DNA of 64,000 nucleotides, taken from the NCBI GenBank assembly GCA_973895155.1, contig OZ316897.1, forward strand, positions 2,173,312 through 2,237,311, written 5' to 3'. The notes under the pieces were generated by a model that was not told the DNA's origin, ran no database searches, and was given only the letters and a program-made list of their open reading frames with translations. This document shows, in pieces, positions 15,771 through 59,100 of this stretch. Position numbers and translations under genes: made by a program. This DNA comes from Marsupella aquatica (lineage: Eukaryota; Plantae; Marchantiophyta). The stretch's first letter is position 1. Each line of letters opens with the position of its first letter.

Positions 15771-15999
15771 TGATGTGTGGGACCTTCTTTCTTGCCCTCT
15801 GTGATTGCCGGAAACACTCGCAATTGGCAATCCTCTCTCTCCACACTGCTTTCCCTCAGAGGCTGCAATTAAGTCGTTGAATCCATTTCGAGAATTTTCC
15901 GATTCATTCAATCGAGTTCGTAGTCTCTGCTCTTCCTGCCTTCCTGCAGCTCTCTTTCCCTGCATTTTGTTTCTTATGGTGTCTATCGATTCCAGAAAC

Positions 16000-18900
16000 A
16001 TGATAATGTCCGACCAACAGTACCAGGCTCTTCTGGGCAGATCTCGTCGGCCTTCCAGTGTTTCCGCACAGTTACAGGCTGCTCAGGGTGCTCAGTACGT
16101 TCCCCGGAAGCTTTATACCGACAGGGTGGCTGCTGCCGATCCATACAAGGCTGCAGAGACTAGAATACCTTCTCTTGCCGGATCAGCTGTCCCTTACCCT
16201 CCCACCAACAGAGCTGACAACTACCCAGATTCTCAAGACATACGAGCTCAATTGGCTGCTGAAAGACGGGGTGCTTTGCTATCTTCTCCTGCACTGGTCG
16301 ATTACTCTCCTCCACGCTATGTGGACCAGATTGGGTCCCGGGTCCTGGCTGGCACTCCAGTCTCTCCTGAAGTGGTGGGTGCATATTCTGGCCATTATCT
16401 TTCCCCAACTCCACAACGTGCAGGCCAGCCTCTGTCAAATTCTGACCTTCTAGCTGCCCGGGCAAGACGCTCGGAAATTGCTGCTGCGCTCCCAGGTGGG
16501 TATGGAAATGAAGTACGAAGAATTGCCCCTGCTGCGTCCTACGATGAGCCTGGTTTGTTTTCAGGACAGGCAGCAGGCATTCTGGGCCCTGGTGGTGCAA
16601 GAAGGGGCCGGGAGTTGGACCAGTATTTACTGTCGGTTCAACCTGAGAAGCTTGTCCGATATGCTGCCTCTGTTCTTGCTCCAGATCCAGTTCTTAGGCG
16701 GAGTGGCTACCCCATCGCAGGCAGCACTCTAAATTCAGAAGAAGATGATCGATACTCCAATTACCGTAGAGCCAAAGCTCGGCGAACTGAGTCGCATGAA
16801 TTCGGAGGTAGTGAGCCAGGACCTCAAAGAGTCAGAGAGAGGGACATTTACCGAGAAAGGGAGCACTACCGTGAGAGGAGAGGAGGAGAAGGGGAGTCAG
16901 GTAGAGAACGACGAAGGCATTCACCTGGTAGAAGGCAAACAAATGGATCTTTAGGCAAGGGAGGCGATGCCAATCGTTTGGATCGTCTAAATAACACCAC
17001 ACAATCGTCTGAGGAAAAGTATGGCCAACGAAATGGAGGGCGAGATAAACGTAGTAGAGCTTCTGAGACGTCTGGAAATCTGGACAAGGATGCGGAGCTG
17101 AAAGAGAAGGTCGAAGATCCCGATTCGGATAAGGATTCCGAGCTTGGCTCGCTGTGTGCTGACCTCTCGGATTCTGATGAGGACAAAGTGGAGAAAAAAT
17201 CTGATGATGCAGCTACCGTTATTGATGGTCCACTGGCTGGGATGATATTTGGGTGCTCTTCTGCCACCTTTCACGAATGTATGAGGCTCCAGTTATTCGG
17301 GCTACCGGCCAAGAGCAAGGACGATGTCATGCGAGTGACTCCTGGAACGAAAGTGTTTCTCTTCAATTTTGACACAAAGGAGCTGTCCGGCATTTTCGAG
17401 GCTGTTTCTCAAGGCGGATGGCAACTTCAGCCCGATGCTTTCCGAGACTTTGGGGGATTTCCAGCTCAGGTGATTTGCTGGCACGGATAACTCTATTCAC
17501 CCCAAATACTACCCTATAGAGGACGGGATAGGGACTCCATTGCCTGCTACAGATTACGTTCTGTAGGATTTAGATAACTGCAAATACTTTGGCGTCCTGT
17601 GAAATTTAAGGATATAACTTGGACAGTTCTATGTCGACATCCGTCCTGTCATGCTAGAAACTAACCTCGTTCCTATGTTATTTAATTGCTCAGGTACAAG
17701 TGTGCTGCTCGGAACAATGCCCGAATCTGCCACAAAGTGTGTTCAAGCCTGCCATTAGAGAGAATTACGTCAGTCAGACCAGATTTAGGTTCGATCTTAA
17801 TGCCAAGCAGGTGCGTTTATCCAACTCCGGGCCCAAAAATTGGCATTTCTGTGTAGAAGGTGTTGCTGCTATAGATAGAACGCATCATTCTTTTGTTCAT
17901 CCATAAAATATTCAAACATCCTATTGGTAGAATGTTCGCGGAAAAGCTCATCGTTGTGAAGAAATTCCGTATGCTCAGAATGTTAAGGTGGATATTATCA
18001 GTCGGGATTGTTTACCGGGACACGTATCTGACACATGTCTTGAACGGTTTCTGTAAACAGGTGAAGGACCTGGTTAAAATGTTTAGACAAGCAGGAAGAA
18101 CGCTTCCAGAACGGCAAGACCCTTTGGCGGATCGCTACTTAAGTGCGCGTCTTCAGTCTGAAGACTATTTAGCGCGAGGAGGCCAGCAGCAAAGACTTTA
18201 CCCTCGGCACCCTCAGGCACGTTTTGGAAAATCAAGAGTCCCTTATGCGAGTGTCAAATCTATGTCACCCAAGAGTAGTATTCGTAAGTCCAAAAGGGGA
18301 TCAAAGAGAGCATTGAGAGGAAGGAAGAAAAGAAAAGTCTCTAATAAGCCCGAGTCTCCCATGGCAGATAACTGCAGTCTCTATAGTCTATCAGGGGAGA
18401 TTCAAGAGGCAGATGTTACCATAAATTCTAGCGGATGCGATGATGCCTCTAACACAAACAATGCTGTTATAGTCAGGGAGGCTATTGAAACAGGTAGTTC
18501 CAGAATCGTTGATCAGCAAAAAGAGATCATTGAGACACCCGCTGCTAAATCCATCTCTCCGTCTGGTCCAGACCATGGTCTAACTCATAGCAAAGCTGAG
18601 GAGCCCCCCTGTGTTAGAGTGGAAGTGAGAGTTGCTGCTGAGGTTGTTGGGAAGGACGAAGAGTCAGAATTGATCGCTGCCGAGTTTGCCATAGATTCTG
18701 AGGCTCCCTTCATCATAGAAGAAGTAACGATTCCTTCTGCGGTTGTTCGCAAGGGTGAAGAAGTAGAAGTAGTTTCTGGCGAGGTTTTAATGGATTATGA
18801 GTCTCCTCGTGTTAGAAAGGAAGAGATAGTTGTTGCTGACGCTATAGAGGAAAAACTGCAAGTGATTGCTGCTGAGGTCGCCATAGATTCTGAGGTACCC

Positions 18901-33799: not shown

Positions 33800-34030
33800 G
33801 TGGAATTCAGAATTGACCGAAAGCTAGAGAAATTTAGAAATTCATGATCACTTTAGTATTTGATAAATCTCCCAATGTTATACTCATTTGAAAGCTAGAG
33901 AACTTTGGAAACTTATAATCTCCTCATAACTCAACTAAATCTATCAATGTTAAGTTTATTAAAAAGCTAAAGAAATTCTAAAATTCATAATCTCTTTAGT
34001 ATTGGATAAAATTTATCAATAGTAGGTTCA
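33800..34030 (+). repeat. About 70-bp tandem repeat; opposite-orientation copies at about 58750-59100
   Basis: aaagctagag anchors near 33820, 33890 and 33962; ctctagcttt-type anchors near 58841, 58930, 58999 and 59071. Confidence 0.7.
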
Positions 34031-35181
34031 TTCTCATGGAAGGGGTCAACATTTCAGGGGTTGTATAACAAACATTTCTATTCACATTAGAGATTACGAA
34101 ATCACGGGTAAAATTTATTTTTCAATTACTTACTCAATTCCTACTGAATGATGACAATGTTGAGCTCATCAGGACCGTCTCTTCAAGATCTTTCTAACAC
34201 CATATTATATGTGAGTTTTCATTATGATTTGACTCGACAATGTAAAATTGAAAATTGCTACCGGGAAAATTTTATGTTTTGAGTAAAATCAAAATGTAAA
34301 TAAAACCGTTAATGGGAGCAGTTTTACCTCAATCTTTTTGTCTTTTGATCTGCATGTCAATTTTTTTACATTCTTTTTTACGGCATGGTGTCCCAACTTT
34401 TACAACAAACTTGCCACAAACACGAATGCAAATGTTAATTTTATCCAAAAACAAGTCTCTTCCTGTTTGTAGCATGCCATGATGATGTGGTGCGCTGTGG
34501 AGCCAGGAATTTTGCAAAGGACTCCTAATGGGGGTCTGTAATGACAACCACTCCGAAAAAGTGGTGCAACTGTGTATTATATGAGTTAATATATTAACCG
34601 CCAAAGGACAATTCACTTTTGTGAAGAACGCTCTCAATACTTGCACACAAGCATCAACTTACCATTTCAAAGGGATATATATTAATGCTTCACTTTATAA
34701 AGCATGCCCTGAGTAGTTTGTGTGAGCCTCGATACTTACAGGTCACATATGATTCAGAAGTGTAAAAAGTGATATCCAAACACATTTTGATGTTCTGAAT
34801 TTATCCATCCCAACTTTGTAAGTAAGTGGGGGCTTCACAGCATAGCCCTTGATTTGAACTTTCATGGAGGTACCCAGATGATCCTCTCATATATACATAG
34901 TCTGAATTTTGCCCTTAACCTTTTTGGATGATTACTTCCGTTTTATTCTGCACTTTGATTAGAGTTTGCTCAAATTAAACTCATGTATATATATATATAT
35001 CACCTTGAAGAAATCTTTAAGGTTTGAATAGGCTGAATATAATTGATAGACACTATCATCGGGTAAATTGAGATGGGCATGCAAAATGACATGCTCTGAA
35101 TTCCACAGGCCTAGGATGTTCTTCGCTTACTGGAGGGTTAAATACCGAACTAGGGCCTTTCTGTTGGAACTTTCAACAGCA

Positions 35182-35252
35182 TGGACCGGCTAGGAATTGA
35201 ACCTAGGACCTCCCGTGTACATCGTAGTGCTCTACCACTGAGCTACAGGCCC
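35182..35252 (-). other. tRNA-like cloverleaf in the TRIM LTR (probably a Pol III promoter, not a decoding tRNA)
   Basis: GGGCCTG TA GCTC AGTGGTA GAGC A CTACGATGTACACGGGA GGTC CTAGG TTCAATT CCTAG CCGGTCC A: perfect D and T stems, 6/7 acceptor pairs, broken anticodon stem. Confidence 0.85.
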
Positions 35253-35376
35253 TTTGTGGCTGTATCCATCTTCGTTCGAGTGTGGTTCATTTCCAACACC
35301 CTCCCTTGAGCCGCACTCGCTACAAGGGAAACTCCTTTTCTTTGGCTCTGATACCATGTTGGAACTTTAAACAGCA

Positions 35377-35447
35377 TGGACCGGCTAGGAATTGAACCTA
35401 GGACCTCCCGTGTACATTGTAGTGCTCTACCACTGAGCTACAGGCCC
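35377..35447 (-). other. tRNA-like cloverleaf in the second TRIM LTR
   Basis: Identical to 35182-35252 except for one substitution in the anticodon arm. Confidence 0.85.
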
Positions 35448-36980
35448 TTTGTGGCTGTCATCTTCGTTCGAGTGTGGTTCATTTCCAACACTTTTTACCC
35501 AAATTCATCTGCGAATGGGTTAGCTAGAAGCGAACAACGGCTCATGGAACAAAGGTGAAGCATTCATGTCACTCGTGACTATGCCAATGACACATAGACC
35601 TACTTCTCAGATGAGGCAAGTTCTGCTAACGTCTTCAATCAGTCTCCTTAGCTGGACCAAGGAAGAAAGGGAAACATATATACTTTGAGATCTCTACTTA
35701 GTTGCTGTCAATGCTTCTCTGTTCTTCATGCTGCAGTTTTGACTGCAAGTCCATCTGGCTCTGCGGCTCAAGATGCCCTCGTCTGGGTGGCTACCGGAGT
35801 ACCCTGAATGCATCACGGGCGAGAGTTGCACAGGCCTAGCTATATAGTAAGAATGGATGGCGAGGTGGAAATTGGTAGATATAAGTGCAGTGTCGTTGTT
35901 TAGTAGTTCCAGCTCTATCATGAGCTCTATTTTCAATTTTCCAGCTCGACATCCCTAAGCGTAAAGATGCAATAGCTTCCCGTTCCCTGAAACATCTGAC
36001 AGTGGGACTGAATTCACGTCATATCAGCTAGCCCTATAACCAGTAGTGCTAATTAACGAACCTAACGGAAAGTTTTTCACAGCTGTGATCGAGGCTTATA
36101 TATACTAGCTTTCTGGAAGTATCAGGTCATTGTGTTCCAGAATTAGCAGCTCCCATCGTGGAAAACAATTAACTAGGTTCCTGATCAGTCCCAAATTCTC
36201 TTGAAGGGGGTCCATATATGGTAAGCTTCAGCTGCATTTAACGTTGTCTGACCTGGTTTATTAGAGCACTATGTAAATTAAGTATGGGATTACTTTGCAT
36301 CCCGTGTGCGGATTACACGACACACGGATAAAACTAAGAAGTGATCTCCTAAAGAATCTACAGTACCTTGTGACCAGAGTCCGCGGTCTGAAGGACTGAT
36401 TCCGTAGCTACACATGCAGATTGTGTTGAAATTGTATGGGATGAAGGTCGGGTTCAAGGTGTCTGGACTCATGGCAGGTTTAATGGCCACCTTCTCCGAT
36501 CCAAATTTATAATTCGTTGCTAGTTGAGCTCATAAGTATTCAACTGAAGAGCAACTGAATCCTGCTATAGGAATATAGGATTGAGGAACCATTTGAACGA
36601 CAATTGCAGAAATTTCAGGAGGGAAACGAAGCTGGTGGAACTCCCACAAAGTATTCTGAAATCGTACATATAAATAAAGTAACGCTTAACGTCGCCTTCG
36701 ACAGTCAAAAGTACAAGTGCAGATCGCGAACCCACTTCTCGATGCGGGGATAGACTTGGAGTATTCATCTTTGGCGTTCAAGATATTTTCTGAGTGCGTG
36801 AACTAATTGGCGCCGTGCTCCAAATCTGAACTAAAGGCTTTTATCCCAACCCCAGCCTGGCGCCCCATACAATCAGTCATCCACTATGTGTACTGTAGTT
36901 GTGCACTCAAATAATTTTCAAGACCGCCAGGATGGGGCCTGCACCTGCATGCTACAAGTATACATATTAATATTTCACGC

Positions 36981-49777: not shown

Positions 49778-51733
49778 ATGGGTCGGTGGAGATCATTCTT
49801 CAAACAAAGGTTTTCATCAAGGGGAAAATCTCCAAGAAGACAGGATGAGGTCCCATGCTCGATCTCAAGTTCTCAAAGCGCCAGAGAGAATTCGCGCAAT
49901 GTTGATGAAAACCGGGAAGGAAGCTCCCCTGAAGCCACCAGTGCTGATCGTCATGATTCTCCAAGGAAAGACCCCTTTTGGAGTAGAGTTAAAAAGCGAT
50001 CATACCAACTGGTGGACTTCCATGCACTTCCAGAGTATTTGCGTGGAAACGAGTTCATTTTACGGCACTACAGAGCAGATTGGCCGTTGAAGGAAGCTCT
50101 CCTTAGCGTTTTCAGGATCCATAATGAGACTCTTAACATTTGGACGTGAGTTGCAATTCTTATGTGCTTCCTCGTGAAAGTCTTAGTCTCTCACCTTGAT
50201 CCTTAATTGAGTAGTCCAGGACGTCTGTTACTCTCTGGCCAGGAACATGACGTTCTCAATATCCTTCTCAATATCCACTGTAGTATGAGTAGCAAATCCC
50301 AGCATCTTCAATACATCTCCTTGTCACCGTAGCGTTGTCATTCGAGGTCATTGGCAATCACAGATTCCAAGAAGCCATGGCAGTCCATTCCACTTGAGCA
50401 GCGTAATCTGAGGTTGGAAAGAATGCAGGAAATTCCTGCTTGGGATGTTGAGACAAGACGAGAGACTTTTATCTCCAAACTTACAACTTCACGCTTTTCT
50501 CCATCTCTGCCAAAACTCTGAGATTTTGATGTTCAGACACGAACCTTGAGGTTGGAGATAGCTGTAGGGTTTGAGACTCAGAGATCTTGTCATCTTACGG
50601 TGAACCTGATCATTTCCCCTCCTTTGCCTTTTGCAGGCATTTGATTGGCTTTCTGTTGTTTCTGGGGTTGACTATCTACACGGTATGGCAAATGCCTAAA
50701 GGCGAATATCCTTCTTTGTCAAAGTTGGCCACACTGCCAACAATGAGAGATCTTAACAAATACCACGCGGAGATAATGGCTTGCTTCCCGCCATTACCAC
50801 CATCTGTCCCGTCTCTTTTCCGTTCTCGATACTCTCCTGTTGTAATCAAGGACCACATTGCAAGCTTTCGTTCAAGCCCTCCACAATGCATTGTGGTAAG
50901 CTCGATGTGACAAACCTATCCCCTCGTTGAATTGACTCAATTCGAAATATGTACAACCCTCCCTTAACTATAACATGAAGTCATCGTTGAAGATCCAAGA
51001 GATCTGTCTATTCTTGTGACAGTATTCTCCAAAATCGTATTTACTGTCTAACAAAGCATGGAGCATTGTGGTGCAGCAAACCGTGAAGGAAGATATAGGC
51101 AAAATGTTAGCACCAATTATGCGGAAACCAACGACTCGATGGCCATTCTTCATTTTTCTGGGAGGTGCAATGTTGTGTTTGTTAACAAGTAGCTGCGCCC
51201 ATTTGCTTTGTTGCCACTCCAGTCGATTGACGTCTTTCCTATGGCGCTGTGATTATGCTGGAATTTCAGCCATGATTGCAACTTCCTTCTTCCCTCCTGT
51301 TTACTACACATTCATGTGTCATCCCAACTGGCGAAACTTCTATCTCACAAGCATTACGATCATTGGTGTCCTCATTTTGATAGTTACTGTCAGTCCATCA
51401 TGGCAGAGGAACAAGTACAGAGTTTTCAGAACACTCTTATTTTGCGGGATGGGAATGTTTGGAATCATTCCATACATTCACAAATTCATAAGCCACAATC
51501 ACAACGAAGCATCGTACAATACCACAACACATGAAATTGTCATGAGCGTCTTTTATGGGCTTGGAGCCCTCTTCTATGCCACTCGCATTCCTGAGCGGTG
51601 GATGCCTGGCTCATTTGATATCGCAGGGCATAGCCATCAAATATTCCACGTCCTCGTAGTCTGTGGTGCTTACACCCACTACAAAGCTGCCTTGTTATAC
51701 CTCGAATGGAGGGACCAAAAAGGATGTGACTGA
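49778..51733 (+). CDS. HHP: Heptahelical transmembrane protein (PAQR / haemolysin-III / adiponectin-receptor family); exons 49778-50145, 50637-50895, 51077-51733
   Basis: [70 protein letters not shown]. Confidence 0.93.
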
Positions 51734-52511: not shown

Positions 52512-55500
52512 TTATCTTCCACCTGCAATCAGTCTATCAGAATCTTTAGCCTTTTTCTTGACCATACTGACAATTCTGTCGACATATGCAATGTATGCTT
52601 CAATGTTGAACTTCCGCTTGCAGCCTGCATAGTTCATGTAACGGATCTTTCCGAAGACTGGTCGCTCCTTCCAACCCTGGGACAATTCGCCCGAAGCACG
52701 CAGAAATTTAGTTGTCTCAATCAGCTGACAGGGCTTTCAATGGAGATATATTGATAAGACGCCCATCTAGAAACTCAATTTCTAATTTGTCATAAGAGTG
52801 AGAGATCTCATCTGAAGAAACAATGTTCGGGATGATCAGTGAACAACATGGAGAAAACTAAAGAGATGCCCTCACCTCACTCACCTGGTCATGAATACCA
52901 CAGATAGACCACATACAGCCCACATAGCCATTCGGATCCCTACCGTCCAGTTCGTACTGCAAGAAACAAATTCAGTTTGCCTTAAGTAAATGACTTGATG
53001 GAAAAGAAATAGACGATACACTAGTTATCCACTGACCAGTTTCCACACTTGTTCATTATTTTATCCCCTTGCCCTCATCAAAATAATTCACACATAATCT
53101 TAATTCCACCAATGCTAGAGGTTTCCCCACTCCCTGCACAACCCCTTTGGGCTGCCAGAGGGATCGTGCGTCTAGACTCTCATTGTTCGGGAAATAGGAA
53201 CGGACGAAAGATATAAGGCCAGAGCACCAAACTTTCATAGCGGTCAAGTGTGTAAAGCATTCTCGTTCGCCAGACTTGTCAAAATACCTTATCATTGAGG
53301 TAAATTGCTATCTCCAATGCGTCTTCTGGACCTGGAGTCCACTCTAGGATTTTTTTCGCCCAGTACATTCTGCAAGTGGAAAGAGGAAAAACGTTAATAG
53401 GGGAACACCAGAAATCAAGACACGTCCCAGGAATTGTATTTGACTCACGTAGAGATAAGGAAATCTCCAGTAACCATCTCATTATAAGCACCCCAACAAT
53501 GCACTAGTATTGTCCGCCCAAAGACCTTTGTACCATAGTAGAATCAGCGTATGTACCTCATAAAGCCGTGCATCTTCCCATGGTGAACCATTTCTAGCTG
53601 TGATGCGTTCCAGAGCTGTAAACAGAAGATAGATACATGTGAGAAATAGAAATAAGCTTCTCATGCGTATAAAACTACAATTCACATAACATGCAGCAAA
53701 AATATTTATCTGCGTATTGTCAGATCCAGGCCAAAAATTTAAAAATCCTAGGCATTGTCGTAGAAGCAAAATTTATAGACTGCTAAATAATCAGGAGCGC
53801 GAAATGTGTCAGGTAGGTTCCAGTGCGTACTTTGTCATGAGTCCTTCCTTTCTCCAACTGTTCCCTCCTATAGATCAACCAAAATGAGCATGTCTCAATG
53901 TCAGATGGATTAAAAAGTTCCTCTCCAGAACATCACTATTGCAGATGGCTTTGAAGGACCTACGTATATAAAAATTCCCGTTTGTCTGAGGTATGATCCC
54001 GAAGTGTCTTTTGGGCCCAGTCCCATGCACCGCTGATGTTGTCATAATTCGGTTGGTAGTGGCAAAAGTTTTCCGAAAGCTCTCGCCTGACTACTAGTTC
54101 TTCTAAGAAAGAGTCAACCGTCTGAGAAACAAGACCACATACACAGGTAAGCTAGAAAAATTTGTCTCTGAAAAGTCTCTACTCAGTAAATACACCATTA
54201 TGCTGAAGTTAAGCGCCTTAATCTTATTATGTAGCATGTCGCTGGGTTCAAACACGTTCGACTGCGATTCATGCTCTCGTCTTTCAAGGGTGAGACCAGG
54301 AGAGACGGATGCTTTGGAAGACATTACGAGATGCACGCATACCTTTGGACAGTTCTTTCTAACCCTGCGTGCTTCTAAGGCAGCTCGCTGAGGAGAAATG
54401 TGACCGTAGTGCAAGTAGGGCGATAAACCGGAAAGAGAACCGATCTTTGTTGGATCATTCCGTTCATCGTACTTCTGAAGCCGTTTGGTGAGAAAACCAT
54501 TTTTGGTGCCTTGCAGTGCCTCAAGTGCCGCATCTTCTCCTGGTTCGCACCATTCTACCTCTGGAACTTCTGCACCCACACTTGTGCCAACGAAACCGAT
54601 GTCGTTCAGTCAAACCAGGCATAGATCAGACAATTGAAGTTGAACAATTGGGGACTGGGCAAAAAACCGAAATTTTCAAAGGAAAACGAGAACCCTCAGC
54701 AAAGCTGTACTTAAGTTTCGTTGTTCTGCAATGATGGCTAGGGAAACGCATCACAAGCGAAAGAGCTCCCAAGAAAATCCAGAGCACGGAGAACCGCGTG
54801 TGAATCGAACCCGACTTAGGTAAAGACAAAGGAAAGTTAAACAAAGATATTGGGAGTGCAACTGATACGACACACCAAATGATTCCAAACCAATTCACCT
54901 CAGCACTTCGTCTATCAACAGATCCCAGAAGATAGGGTCAGGATCCACAGAGGTCCAGGGCACTTGGGGAGGCTTCAAGTCTGGGAATTCCACCAAGTAT
55001 TCCGGAAGCAACTTGTGAATCTTTGTTCTAATGGTGCGTGCTCCATACTCCAGCTTCGGAGAACAAACCCAAACTGGAACAACGTTGTGTGCGTCCACTT
55101 CATGAACGCTAACAGACGGCGCTACATTGACACAAATTCCATCCCGCCAGACACGCCCTATTCTCAAAGGAGAAAAGTCCATCACCAACATGGACGCATC
55201 ACACTCTTTCAAAAATGCAGGTATCGTGTCTTCTGCTTTGCCCTGCCCAGATGAAAGAACTTTTCCGTTAGCGAGGAAAGTCTGCTGAGAGAAAGATAAA
55301 TTCAAACTTGAACATTGTTTGGGTCCAGTCCTCTATGTATTTTCAAGATATACCTTCTGTGTTTAGTGGGAAGAAGAGTGTGGAAGAAGACAGATAGAAC
55401 TTGAGTCTCAGATAGAAACCACCATTTTTTAGATAACGACATAGTTGCACAAGATTGAGATCTAGAATTATAAATCTCTGCTGTATGGAATAGGAGAGTG

Positions 55501-56137
55501 TCAAGGAATTCTACATCTGTTAGAGTTTTTGGTTTTGGATTAGTGTCTTAAGCCGACACACAACCGGAAGACATTATAAGGGTGTATTATTTGAAGCACT
55601 AGGGAATGAATACTCGGTAAAACTGCATATAAGAGCATAATAGCGAATGATGCGCACCCGAAACAAAAAGAAAGGAATATTAGAAGCTGCGAGGTTCTTC
55701 TCCAGCACACGAAGGCCCCTCAACATGAACCCAAAGTGACGAGCCTTCGCTCCCAGGAAATTTTCTACCAAGTTGAACACTACAGCCACAGGTGCACCCT
55801 TTTTGTTGGCCTCCTGGATCGCATGAAGTAGGGCCCAATTATCCCGAGATCGCTGATCTCTGGATACCCAATAGATAACTGGGCCTTTCTTTCCTGCGAC
55901 CCCTTCCTTCAGAGTTCTCACCCTATTGTAGTTCACATCATCGCTAACAGGTTTCTTGGGATCAGTCTTGTGTACAGTCTCTGCCTCCAAGTCAACTGAC
56001 GTCCCTCCATCCCACGCATCCCCCTCCTTCTTCGACTTCTTGGGGCTCGGCTTAACCCCACTAGGATCCTGCTTCGATCTCTTCAATACCATATCGATTG
56101 CCGGTTGGACTACCCTTTTATTACTGAGTCTGCTCAT
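52512..56137 (-). CDS. PHR1: Class II CPD photolyase; exons 56137-55658, 55242-54899, 54580-54343, 54121-53964, 53867-53831, 53615-53557, 53369-53288, 52956-52885, 52676-52512; possible upstream in-frame ATG at 56308
   Basis: [86 protein letters not shown]. Confidence 0.97.
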
Positions 56138-59100
56138 CTTGGAAGCTTGTTGGGCAGACTTGCTGACGTCAATTGCTACAGAGAGAACCGAGCAACTAGG
56201 TTGATATTGGTTTGAAATGGCTCCAAAAGGCCTCCGGAGAGCGAGGCACAGTAGGCTGATACTCTTTCCAGAGAAACAGTGCAGCAGGGAGGCAGATTGT
56301 ACCAACATCCAGTGCAAGAGAATTTGGAGTCTTTGAACATCGGATAGAAGCTCTATACCGACATAAGGTTCTAATGCAGCTTCAAGTCCCGAGAAGTTTG
56401 GCCTTGATCAAACACATCGGGCTTTTGAGCCAATCAACAAGTCCACGGCACCAGCAGATTTCCAATATTTACCCAAGCTACAATTTCGTCCCGACCCAAA
56501 GATGTTTCCTCGAATACTAAAGTCTAATGTTTCATCGCATGACCCTGCCAACACAAGCACAAGACTGTCAAAAAAAAACAGAGGCACAATTATGCAGCAT
56601 TTGCGCAACATTCAGCTCAAGGAGAGTCTTCTAGCCCATAGCTTTCCAACGGGGCAGAAAAACATTCCCAAGCCCTGCCAGGCCACCCAAATTCCACAGA
56701 GCCTGCTCTCGAGGACTTAGGACGGTTATTGCCTAAGCTCGGACGAAGAGAAATATCACCAAACTTAAATGCATTGGTCACAAAAGAATATTACGGTATT
56801 GTTGGGAAGCGGTTGAGATGATGGATGCAGGGCCAAAAAGAAATTTTCTTAGAGTCACAATTCCCCCCTAGAGAGGGAACGATAGAGAGACACAGAAAAA
56901 CTGAAGGCCCAAGAGGTTGATAATTCCTCCTGCCTGTAATGGTGGGTCTGACTTAACTGCATTGGTTTGTAAGGAGAACCACCACAACACAATGGAAAAT
57001 GCAACCAAATCCAACCAAAACTGGAGAAGGACGAAGAAGGGACGAAGAAGAGACGGAGAAGGTGGAGACCGAAACTTTCAATTCAACTACTTTATGAAGC
57101 TTTGCGTTTTAAGCCACGAGGACCAAATTTAGAGGACCACGAGAACTCGAATTGAGAGACCAGACGGAAGGAAGTCGACGAACTTTATCACAATTTTTTA
57201 GAAAATAGCAACAGAATCTGTGAGCTTCACAACCGCACTGGCTTTCACTGAGACTGTTGACATACCATGAGGGCAAGAGAAAATGAACAATTACGGACGG
57301 CAAATTGCAAGCTTCCCTTTCCTTTCCTTTTTTCATACGTTTAAAAAATCGAAATCCAGAGGCACGAAGAAACTCTTACAATGACAATCACGGATTTGAC
57401 AAACGAATGGGGCACCAGTTTGAAAGTTTCGTTGTGGTGTGGATTCAAGTCGCCCAAAATTGGAACAATACAGAGCTCTTGCTCGAGGTATTTGGCACAC
57501 GAAGTCGAGAACCAAATAGAACATGTGGGTCTGGGTAGACCAACAAATGGGCAGTCGATTATGTGTCAAGCGAATCCGGGAACCAAATGGTGAGCTTCGA
57601 TTTGGTCTGGATTGAAAACTAGCAAATCGAAAGAGTGGAGCACGCGGGAAAGCGAGTGAATGGTGGGATTAGAAAGATAGCAACGAATCGACGGACGAGG
57701 GAGGCCCACCATAGACGGAGTAAAGAGTGCTGTAATGCTCGTCGACGTGGGTCTCGTCCTGCCTTGCAGTTACTTCTCCACTCCTGTCTGTCTCCTTGAC
57801 CCTAACACTAATGTACTGATTCAATGGATAAGAGCCCCCTAATCTCATTCATTGATATGTTTTAAGTACACCCTAACCCCGAGCCAATCTATTGATTAAT
57901 GGGGATCTCAAACCTCCAAATGTGATGGATCTTAATTTAGTAGGCTAAAGTTATGGACTGTCAAATTCATAGTCCATAGGGAGTGTCTTAGTAGTGCCCA
58001 ATGGCTGGAAATTTTTAGACTCATCATCCTTATGGGGCATGTATCCTTATGGGGCATGTATTTAGGTAAGTTAATCCGTGGACCCCCATGTTCATCCAAG
58101 GAATGTGTGTGATAAAGTGAAATCAATTTTCTACAAGGCGGTAACTGATGATTTTGAGTCTCCCAGTGATCTTGGTGTATGCTCGTACTAAAGAGAACGC
58201 TCAAAAAGATAGAGGAGATCAATCTGGTTGAGATGATCTCTTTGGTTCATCAAACCAAAGGTCGAATGTGTAAGAATTTTTTGGATGGTTTTTGCTCAAA
58301 CATTGGAGAAATCGTGTTTCTATCATTCCTGATTGATTGTTTGTGAGTTACGTTGAGAATTATTGCCACAAGACAGACCGGAGAACATCACTCAACTGTT
58401 GGCGAAAGGGTGCTTGTCATTTTGGTGGGAAGAACGCACAAAATGGATGAGCCATCACTTCACATATAGGTTTTGTAGTTTTTTTAATTTAAGAAAGCTA
58501 TTGTGTAAGGGGGAGACCAAAGATTGTTTCTTTGACACAGAGGTTACATTTGGCGTCAGCCTATGTTAAGAGTGAGCTTTGTTGAAGCCTGGAGCGACAC
58601 GAACAATTCAAATCAGGAAGCAAACGTTGCGGACAAGCAATGACAACGTAATCAAAGAAATCAATTTGCAGTGGCTAAGTTTGTGACGGTGATGGGATTA
58701 TGATGTCTCTTAATAGAGAAAATGTTTCCAATGAGCCTCGGATTGACAATTTTTGTCAAGTTCCAAATGAATTTTTGAATATCTTTGTCTTTCCAGTGAG
58801 TGTGACAATAAGAAATTTTGATCATGAGTTCATGAATTCTTTTAGCTTTTCAACATTGAGTTCGACATTGACAAATTTCATGTCAGATTTTGTCATGGTA
58901 CTAAAGAGATCATGAGGTTTTCAATCTCTCTAGTTTTCTAATGTGTGACATTGGAAGTATTCGTCAAGAATTAAAGAGATCATGAGTATGTGAATTTCTC
59001 TAGCTTTCCAATGAACTTAACATTGATAGATTTTGTCAAGTAATAAGGAGATGATGAGTTTTTAATTTTGCTCTAGCTTAGTTTCCAATGAATGTGATTT

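Follow-up and report, generated by a model that had tools for sequence, protein, structure and literature searches.

The 64,000-nt stretch of liverwort DNA analyzed here (Marsupella aquatica, contig OZ316897.1; hereafter the window) carries at 35162-35490 a 329-bp element in which two long terminal repeats (LTRs), each with a tRNA-like sequence, enclose a short interior. The question raised by this locus is whether the structure is a mobile element and, if so, whether the tRNA-like sequence acts as its promoter. A class of elements with this architecture has been described: Helenus, the TRIMs (terminal-repeat retrotransposons in miniature) with tRNA-like LTRs (a kind of TRIMp3), which Kojima reported in 2024 from a screen begun from Repbase (PMC10886601). 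We are almost certain that, by its structure, the element is a mobile Helenus-type TRIM. The complete statement that we favor, namely that it is a recent copy of an abundant Helenus-type TRIM ('TRIMp3') that would be driven by RNA polymerase III (Pol III) and copied in trans, we regard as probable.

The anatomy of the element was analyzed first, with all coordinates given as window positions and with the minus strand as the sense strand of the element. The limits 35162-35490, proposed in an initial annotation made from the letters alone, were exact both by sequence and by a repeat finder. The 5′ LTR (134 nt, 35357-35490) was delimited by the repeat finder and by the alignment of the LTRs, and the 3′ LTR (137 nt, 35162-35298) also by the loose ends of contigs described below; they are 98% identical, and a 58-nt interior lies between them. 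In the sense orientation both begin with TGTTGGAA and finish with TTCCAACA, which gives the TG..CA ends and the 8-nt terminal inverted repeat that had been annotated for two LTRs of about 135 bp. The LTRs matched each other at an E of about 1e-60 within the window, so that the repeats are not due to chance. Each is composed of a U3-like part (35448-35490 in the 5′ LTR and 35253-35298 in the 3′ LTR), a 71-nt tRNA-like sequence (35377-35447 and 35182-35252, respectively) and a 20-nt tail (35357-35376 and 35162-35181, respectively). Immediately after the 5′ LTR, at 35344-35356 on the minus strand, lies the primer-binding site (PBS) TGGTATCAGAGCC, which matches the 3′ end of the initiator tRNA-Met; as TGGTATCAGAGC(C), it abuts the LTR and is the sole such site in the window. 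A PBS of the TGGTATCAGAGCC type is the usual one in plants for the 3′ end of this tRNA. A 9-nt polypurine tract (PPT), AAGGGAGGG, was read in the sequence immediately upstream of the 3′ LTR (35299-35307, minus strand), and the rest of the interior is a non-coding spacer (35308-35343, minus strand) with several common variant sites among the family copies. No open reading frame (ORF) was found in the 58-nt interior. Hence, the initiator-type PBS, the PPT and the lack of coding capacity were as initially annotated, and both motifs abut the LTRs.

If the element were mobile, copies of it should have independent insertion sites. Public contigs of four runs were aligned to 34700-35950, and only segments at least 80% alike were placed. 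Between 243 and 567 contigs per run matched the element, and the summed depth was in the thousands over the element versus about 20-40 over the single-copy flanks. The matches broke off exactly at 35161/35162 in 21 + 6 contigs of run X1 and in 26 + 7 contigs of run X2, with unlike flanks, and at 35298 in 15 and 11 contigs, so that both ends of the LTR are fixed by these breakpoints. The sequences beyond them were mutually discordant (agreement about 0.4), which looks like the pattern of independent insertions or of solo LTRs. The initial annotation had made its reading depend on other copies with independent insertions, and many copies with different flanks were indeed found. Instead of a mobile element, one could propose a tRNA pseudogene with a local tandem duplication around it, given that the 64-kb window holds a single copy: neither another copy nor a solo LTR was found in it, and no autonomous element that shares the PBS. 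This explanation is refuted by the dispersed contig copies, since in the four runs several hundred contigs carry the same LTR-interior-LTR element between flanks that differ and that begin precisely where the LTRs end. In addition, the PBS and the PPT adjoin the LTRs precisely on their inner sides, and there is a diverged second copy of the flank that is empty. We give this explanation practically no credence.

The empty copy was observed in one contig of runs X1 and X2, which carries a second copy of the left flank, about 9% diverged and free of the element, in which 35162 is followed directly by the diverged counterpart of the DNA from 35497 on. The contig reads CCTTTC and then TACCC, i.e., it has a single CTTTC, and the order in the window is CTTTC-element-CTTTT-TACCC. 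Here the two copies of the putative target-site duplication (TSD), both given on the plus strand, are CTTTC at 35157-35161, adjoining the 3′ LTR, and CTTTT at 35491-35495, adjoining the 5′ LTR, so that 4 of the 5 positions are identical. The empty copy supports a TSD of 5 bp with one later change; therefore, the 5-bp length that had been annotated was borne out, but the two copies are not perfectly identical. As a separate observation, both flanks (35081-35161 and 35497-35524) are present in X1 and X2 also as a second copy of similar depth and approximately 9% divergence, which could be paralogous or homeologous.

The age of the insertion was estimated from the divergence of the LTRs, between which two substitutions and a single indel of 3 nt were counted, as they had been in the initial annotation. 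Two substitutions in 134 nt amount to 1.5%, which indicates a recent insertion, in agreement with the young age first proposed. When rates between 2e-9 and 1.3e-8 per site and year were assumed, which are uncalibrated for this organism, an age of about 0.6 to 4 million years was obtained.

We then analyzed the tRNA-like sequence, which makes up about half of each LTR and has the sense orientation of the element, on the same strand as the PBS. The Rfam tRNA model (RF00005) matched it on the minus strand over its full length with 46.3 bits in the 3′ LTR and 46.1 bits in the 5′ LTR (gathering score 29), and these two segments were the sole matches above the threshold in the whole window. The A box, TAGCTCAGTGG (35430-35440 in the 5′ LTR and 35235-35245 in the 3′ LTR), conforms to TRGCNNAGTGG, and the B box, GGTTCAATTCC (35388-35398 and 35193-35203, respectively), departs from the consensus GGTTCGANTCC at one base; the spacing between both boxes is 31 nt. 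In the 71-nt cloverleaf layout the D stem has 4 of 4 pairs, the T stem 5 of 5 and the acceptor stem 6 of 7 (with a T-C mismatch), whereas only 3 of the 5 pairs of the anticodon stem can be formed in one LTR copy and 2 of 5 in the other. Perfect D and T arms next to a broken anticodon arm had been annotated initially, and this is what was counted. The thermodynamic fold of the tRNA-like part was no better than that of shuffled sequences (z of -0.3 and +0.2), so that a stable cloverleaf is not claimed and the segment is called tRNA-like by its sequence.

Could the LTRs instead spread working tRNA genes, so that tRNA multiplication would be the main effect of the element? ARAGORN accepted the 3′ LTR copy (35182-35252) as a tRNA-Tyr by its GTA anticodon, the Rfam scores are above the cut-off, and Kojima pointed out that a tRNA might be encoded by a few of the Helenus families (PMC10886601). 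However, ARAGORN rejected the 5′ LTR copy, the fold is no stabler than shuffles, and among the variant sites listed those of the tRNA-like part sit in the anticodon arm. Since the anticodon stem is broken and the acceptor stem carries a mismatch, decoding has not been retained. A functional tRNA gene was rejected on these grounds, and the multiplication of tRNA genes as the main effect is highly improbable. Likewise, the isotype from which the segment was derived is not named, because the D-arm motif matched, among viral contigs, only phage tRNA-Val and tRNA-Thr genes, and therefore it is generic. No match was found when the viral contigs were scanned for the LTR end plus the PBS. Three metagenome contig loci that matched a 20-nt motif of the tRNA-like 3′ end (L002:131-160, L001:3399-3429 and L003:81-110) were discarded as unrelated, since only about 30 nt were alike, no tRNA was predicted in them by ARAGORN and they are not family copies. 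These 30-nt matches to the T arm and acceptor end may represent tRNA-derived repeats of other eukaryotes.

The conservation of the tRNA-like segment was addressed with the best-supported common variant sites listed across the family copies. Of these, 22 are located inside the element, and a single one falls in the 142 nt of tRNA-like sequence, which account for 43% of the element (binomial P about 7e-5). This site is 35410; in the tRNA layout it is position 38, which belongs to the anticodon stem, and the single LTR-LTR substitution of the tRNA-like part was located in that stem too. The initial annotation had also required the boxes to be conserved more strongly than the remaining LTR sequence, and the distribution of these sites agrees with it. 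Contigs of a third organism (run X10), 223 in number, matched over about 35180-35252 and 35375-35447, i.e., in the tRNA-like blocks, and beyond these blocks the contigs contained a mutually consistent but diverged U3-like sequence. The LTR of this organism is devoid of 10 nt at 35170-35179 and 35365-35374, so that the terminal TGTTGGAA is 10 nt nearer to the tRNA-like end; hence, the tail between the tRNA-like end and the LTR end is dispensable and no terminator is conserved there. These results indicated that the tRNA-like core is the best-kept part of the element, both within the family and between organisms, and that changes avoid the promoter boxes.

The 71-nt tRNA-like half of each LTR is most likely an internal promoter for Pol III, whose A and B boxes would be bound by TFIIIC. 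The predicted start site is in the 5′ LTR, either at the tRNA-like 5′ end or a few bases ahead of it (at or just upstream of 35447), so that the LTR would be divided into a U3 of about 43 nt and an R-U5 of about 91 nt. A CAA triplet is found at -4 to -2 relative to this predicted start, and CAA triplets mark the start sites of plant tRNA genes. Neither a TATA box in the 43-46 nt upstream of the tRNA-like part nor, as far as was noticed, an AATAAA in the LTR was found. Pol III transcription is thus suggested by the intact boxes, their conservation, their sense orientation, the 43-46 nt upstream, which are too few for a Pol II promoter, and the CAA triplet, and we consider this step moderately likely. 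The longest T run in the sense strand of the element is TTT, and the first TTTT is located 76 nt beyond the 3′ LTR. Because there is no T4 in the LTR, transcripts that read through and end in flanking DNA are expected: Pol III would read through the PBS, the interior and the 3′ LTR and stop in the flank, which for this copy would be at 35083-35086 on the minus strand. Even with read-through ends, the R needed for the first strand transfer would be supplied internally by the 3′ LTR. It may also be speculated that the defects of the anticodon and acceptor stems shield the template from tRNA-processing enzymes.

The alternative that has to be weighed here is an ordinary TRIM with Pol II transcripts or with read-through transcripts from neighboring genes, in which the tRNA-like segment would be a passenger, e.g., the relic of a short interspersed nuclear element (SINE), without any promoter role today. 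A small-RNA promoter is absent from most TRIMs, a SINE insertion into a TRIM LTR is the origin that Kojima proposed for Helenus (PMC10886601), and a Pol III terminator is not present in the LTR. In contrast, a passenger is hard to reconcile with a core that varies less than any other part, among the family copies as well as between organisms, and whose changes lie in the anticodon arm, outside the boxes, nor does it account for the missing TATA box and AATAAA; moreover, an abundant family with a young copy implies a promoter that worked recently. We therefore regard the passenger explanation as unlikely. Nevertheless, several points weigh against Pol III transcription and copying in trans, in addition to the unexceptional fold. 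None of the public runs examined for this stretch is on record as RNA, and hence they provide no RNA evidence either way, also on the passenger explanation. The absence of T4 over 329 nt is not significant, since about 0.5 runs would be expected and more than half of such sequences would be free of T4 by chance. The oligo-T LTR terminator of Cassandra, a plant TRIM, and of Helenus-1_SMo, the Helenus family of Selaginella moellendorffii, is not present here, and the 3′ end of the transcript is therefore undefined. The conservation was measured on the best-supported listed variant sites, and the required likeness of at least 80% favors conserved segments. Finally, no autonomous partner was found in the 64-kb window, and for Helenus in general the use of Pol III was proposed, not demonstrated (PMC10886601). 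A scan for bacterial-type promoters and terminators gave nothing, but such a scan is not applicable to a eukaryotic element.

How transcripts of the element would be converted into new copies follows from its anatomy, together with the established biology of LTR elements. An autonomous LTR retrotransposon would copy the non-coding element in trans: minus-strand synthesis would be primed by the initiator tRNA-Met at the PBS, strand transfer would take place via the repeated R, and the plus strand would be primed at the purine tract. The integrase of the helper would then join the TGTTGGAA...TTCCAACA ends to the target, so that a 5-bp duplication is generated. The 5-bp TSD and the TGTTGGAA LTR start, which is common to fungal Helenus families linked to Copia, give by analogy a hint of a Copia-type helper. 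Plant Gypsy elements likewise produce 5-bp duplications.

In order to place the element among known systems, it was compared with Helenus, Cassandra, retrozymes and tRNA-derived SINEs; the initial annotation had named Cassandra and Helenus as comparators, and these were the right ones. Helenus elements are 311-1263 bp long, have a PBS and a PPT, conserve a box A TRGCY...YGG and a box B GGTTC, and have TSDs of 5 bp in fungi and plants (PMC10886601). Correspondingly, the element is a short, two-LTR structure of 329 bp without coding capacity, in which the PBS abuts the 5′ LTR and the PPT abuts the 3′ LTR. TAGCT...TGG and GGTTC are present within the tRNA-like sequence of the LTR, and the boxes are conserved among the listed variants in a tRNA structure that is non-functional (2-3 of 5 pairs in the anticodon stem). 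Its copies are dispersed with unlike flanks, and the 5-bp TSD was read at this copy alone.

The only plant family listed by Kojima is Helenus-1_SMo (PMC10886601), and it resembles the present element in many respects. It is 325 bp long (329 bp here), its LTR has 120 nt (134-137 nt here) and starts with TGTTAGAA rather than TGTTGGAA, and the LTR end is TTCCAACA in both. In both, the 3′ two thirds of the LTR contain the sense tRNA-like sequence, which has a CAA triplet just upstream, and both have an initiator-type PBS (TGGTATCGGAGC there and TGGTATCAGAGC here), a G-rich purine tract and a 5-bp TSD. A 21-nt motif of the tRNA-like 5′ part of Helenus-1_SMo matches here with 1 mismatch, and a 22-nt motif of the 3′ part with 3 mismatches. 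However, the U3-like part, the tail and the interior (85 nt there versus 58 nt here) do not align when compared by eye, Helenus-1_SMo has a TTTT six bases before its LTR end and no T4 is found here, the anticodon arm differs throughout, and two stem pairs differ by compensatory changes. Membership in the same family was rejected, since the correspondence is confined to the tRNA-like motifs, the 8-nt ends and the PBS, and the rest is unalignable by eye.

Whether the likeness reflects common descent is a different matter. By this account, the present family and Helenus-1_SMo would descend from one tRNA-bearing TRIM of the ancestor of bryophytes and vascular plants and would form an ancient, Cassandra-like, Pol III-driven lineage of land plants, which here would be free of a terminator and whose template RNA would end in the flank or at a tRNA-processing cut. 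We consider this doubtful. As judged from the sequences, the compensatory stem differences are explained no less well by independent captures of functional tRNAs than by common descent. In Data S1 of the Helenus paper, another entry (before Helenus-1_MLe) has nearly the tRNA 3′ half of Helenus-1_SMo (PMC10886601), and TGTTGGAA occurs 11 times, at least two of the occurrences being fungal LTR starts (Kojima 2024). A shared tRNA type and shared ends are thus no proof of common descent. The fungal Helenus families of the Pucciniales, which are linked to Copia helpers (PMC10886601), are likewise TRIMs with a tRNA-like LTR and a 5-bp TSD, but their LTRs and interiors are longer and only generic motifs are in common.

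Cassandra, a TRIM of vascular plants, also carries a Pol III-type small-RNA gene in each LTR, and is the only TRIMp3 for which transcription by Pol III has been demonstrated, from a start in the 5′ LTR to an end in the 3′ LTR (PMC10886601). Its insert, however, is derived from 5S rRNA and has its own terminator in an element of 565-860 bp, in contrast to the tRNA-like sequence, the 329 bp and the lack of a terminator here. When 34600-36100 was scanned with Rfam at E up to 1, tRNA alone was matched and no 5S rRNA, so that membership in Cassandra was rejected; at the same E no hammerhead was matched, and the retrozymes were discarded too. The tRNA-derived SINEs (SINE2) share an A/B-box tRNA head as internal Pol III promoter, a decayed anticodon arm, the lack of coding capacity and mobilization in trans. 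They are copied at the target by the enzymes of long interspersed nuclear elements and have no LTRs, PBS or PPT, whereas all the LTR-type hallmarks are found here, and hence the element is not one of them.

The family is therefore a new and abundant one of a published kind (Helenus/TRIMp3), in a plant lineage without a prior report. No report of Helenus in bryophytes was found in full-text literature searches, and a 2026 survey of sugar-beet TRIMs merely cites the Helenus concept. The initial suggestion of a family undescribed for this lineage is plausible, given that Kojima lists only Selaginella among plants. Helenus was described only in 2024, with plants represented by a single lycophyte, and an abundant, recently active liverwort family widens its distribution in plants. 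Both tRNA tools flagged this element, and elements of this type will inflate the predictions of tRNA genes in bryophyte genomes. Its many young copies make the family a test bed for a Pol III transcript without an LTR terminator as the template of an LTR retrotransposon, and for the autonomous element that would copy it.

The surroundings of the element were also inspected. The ORFs within 3 kb of it had no match to a Pfam family. A second, unrelated high-copy repeat lies at 34742-34825, where in three runs the contigs add up to 10-30 times the depth of the neighboring single-copy DNA and many letters vary, and a tandem repeat with a 72-nt unit (2.8 copies, 69% matches) is located at 33820-34020. 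Farther away, plant genes were recognized by an ORF with a DCD domain (15805-17490), an exon of the AdipoR/HHP type (HlyIII; 51068-51733) and exons of a photolyase/cryptochrome on the minus strand (54895-56317). A protein search with the DCD-domain ORF gave no match. The best named matches of the window proteins are at most 62% identical, which sets the genome apart from annotated species and from Selaginella moellendorffii. In a one-gene tree, which is suggestive only, the HlyIII exon groups with Marchantia among the named plants (support 96/89).

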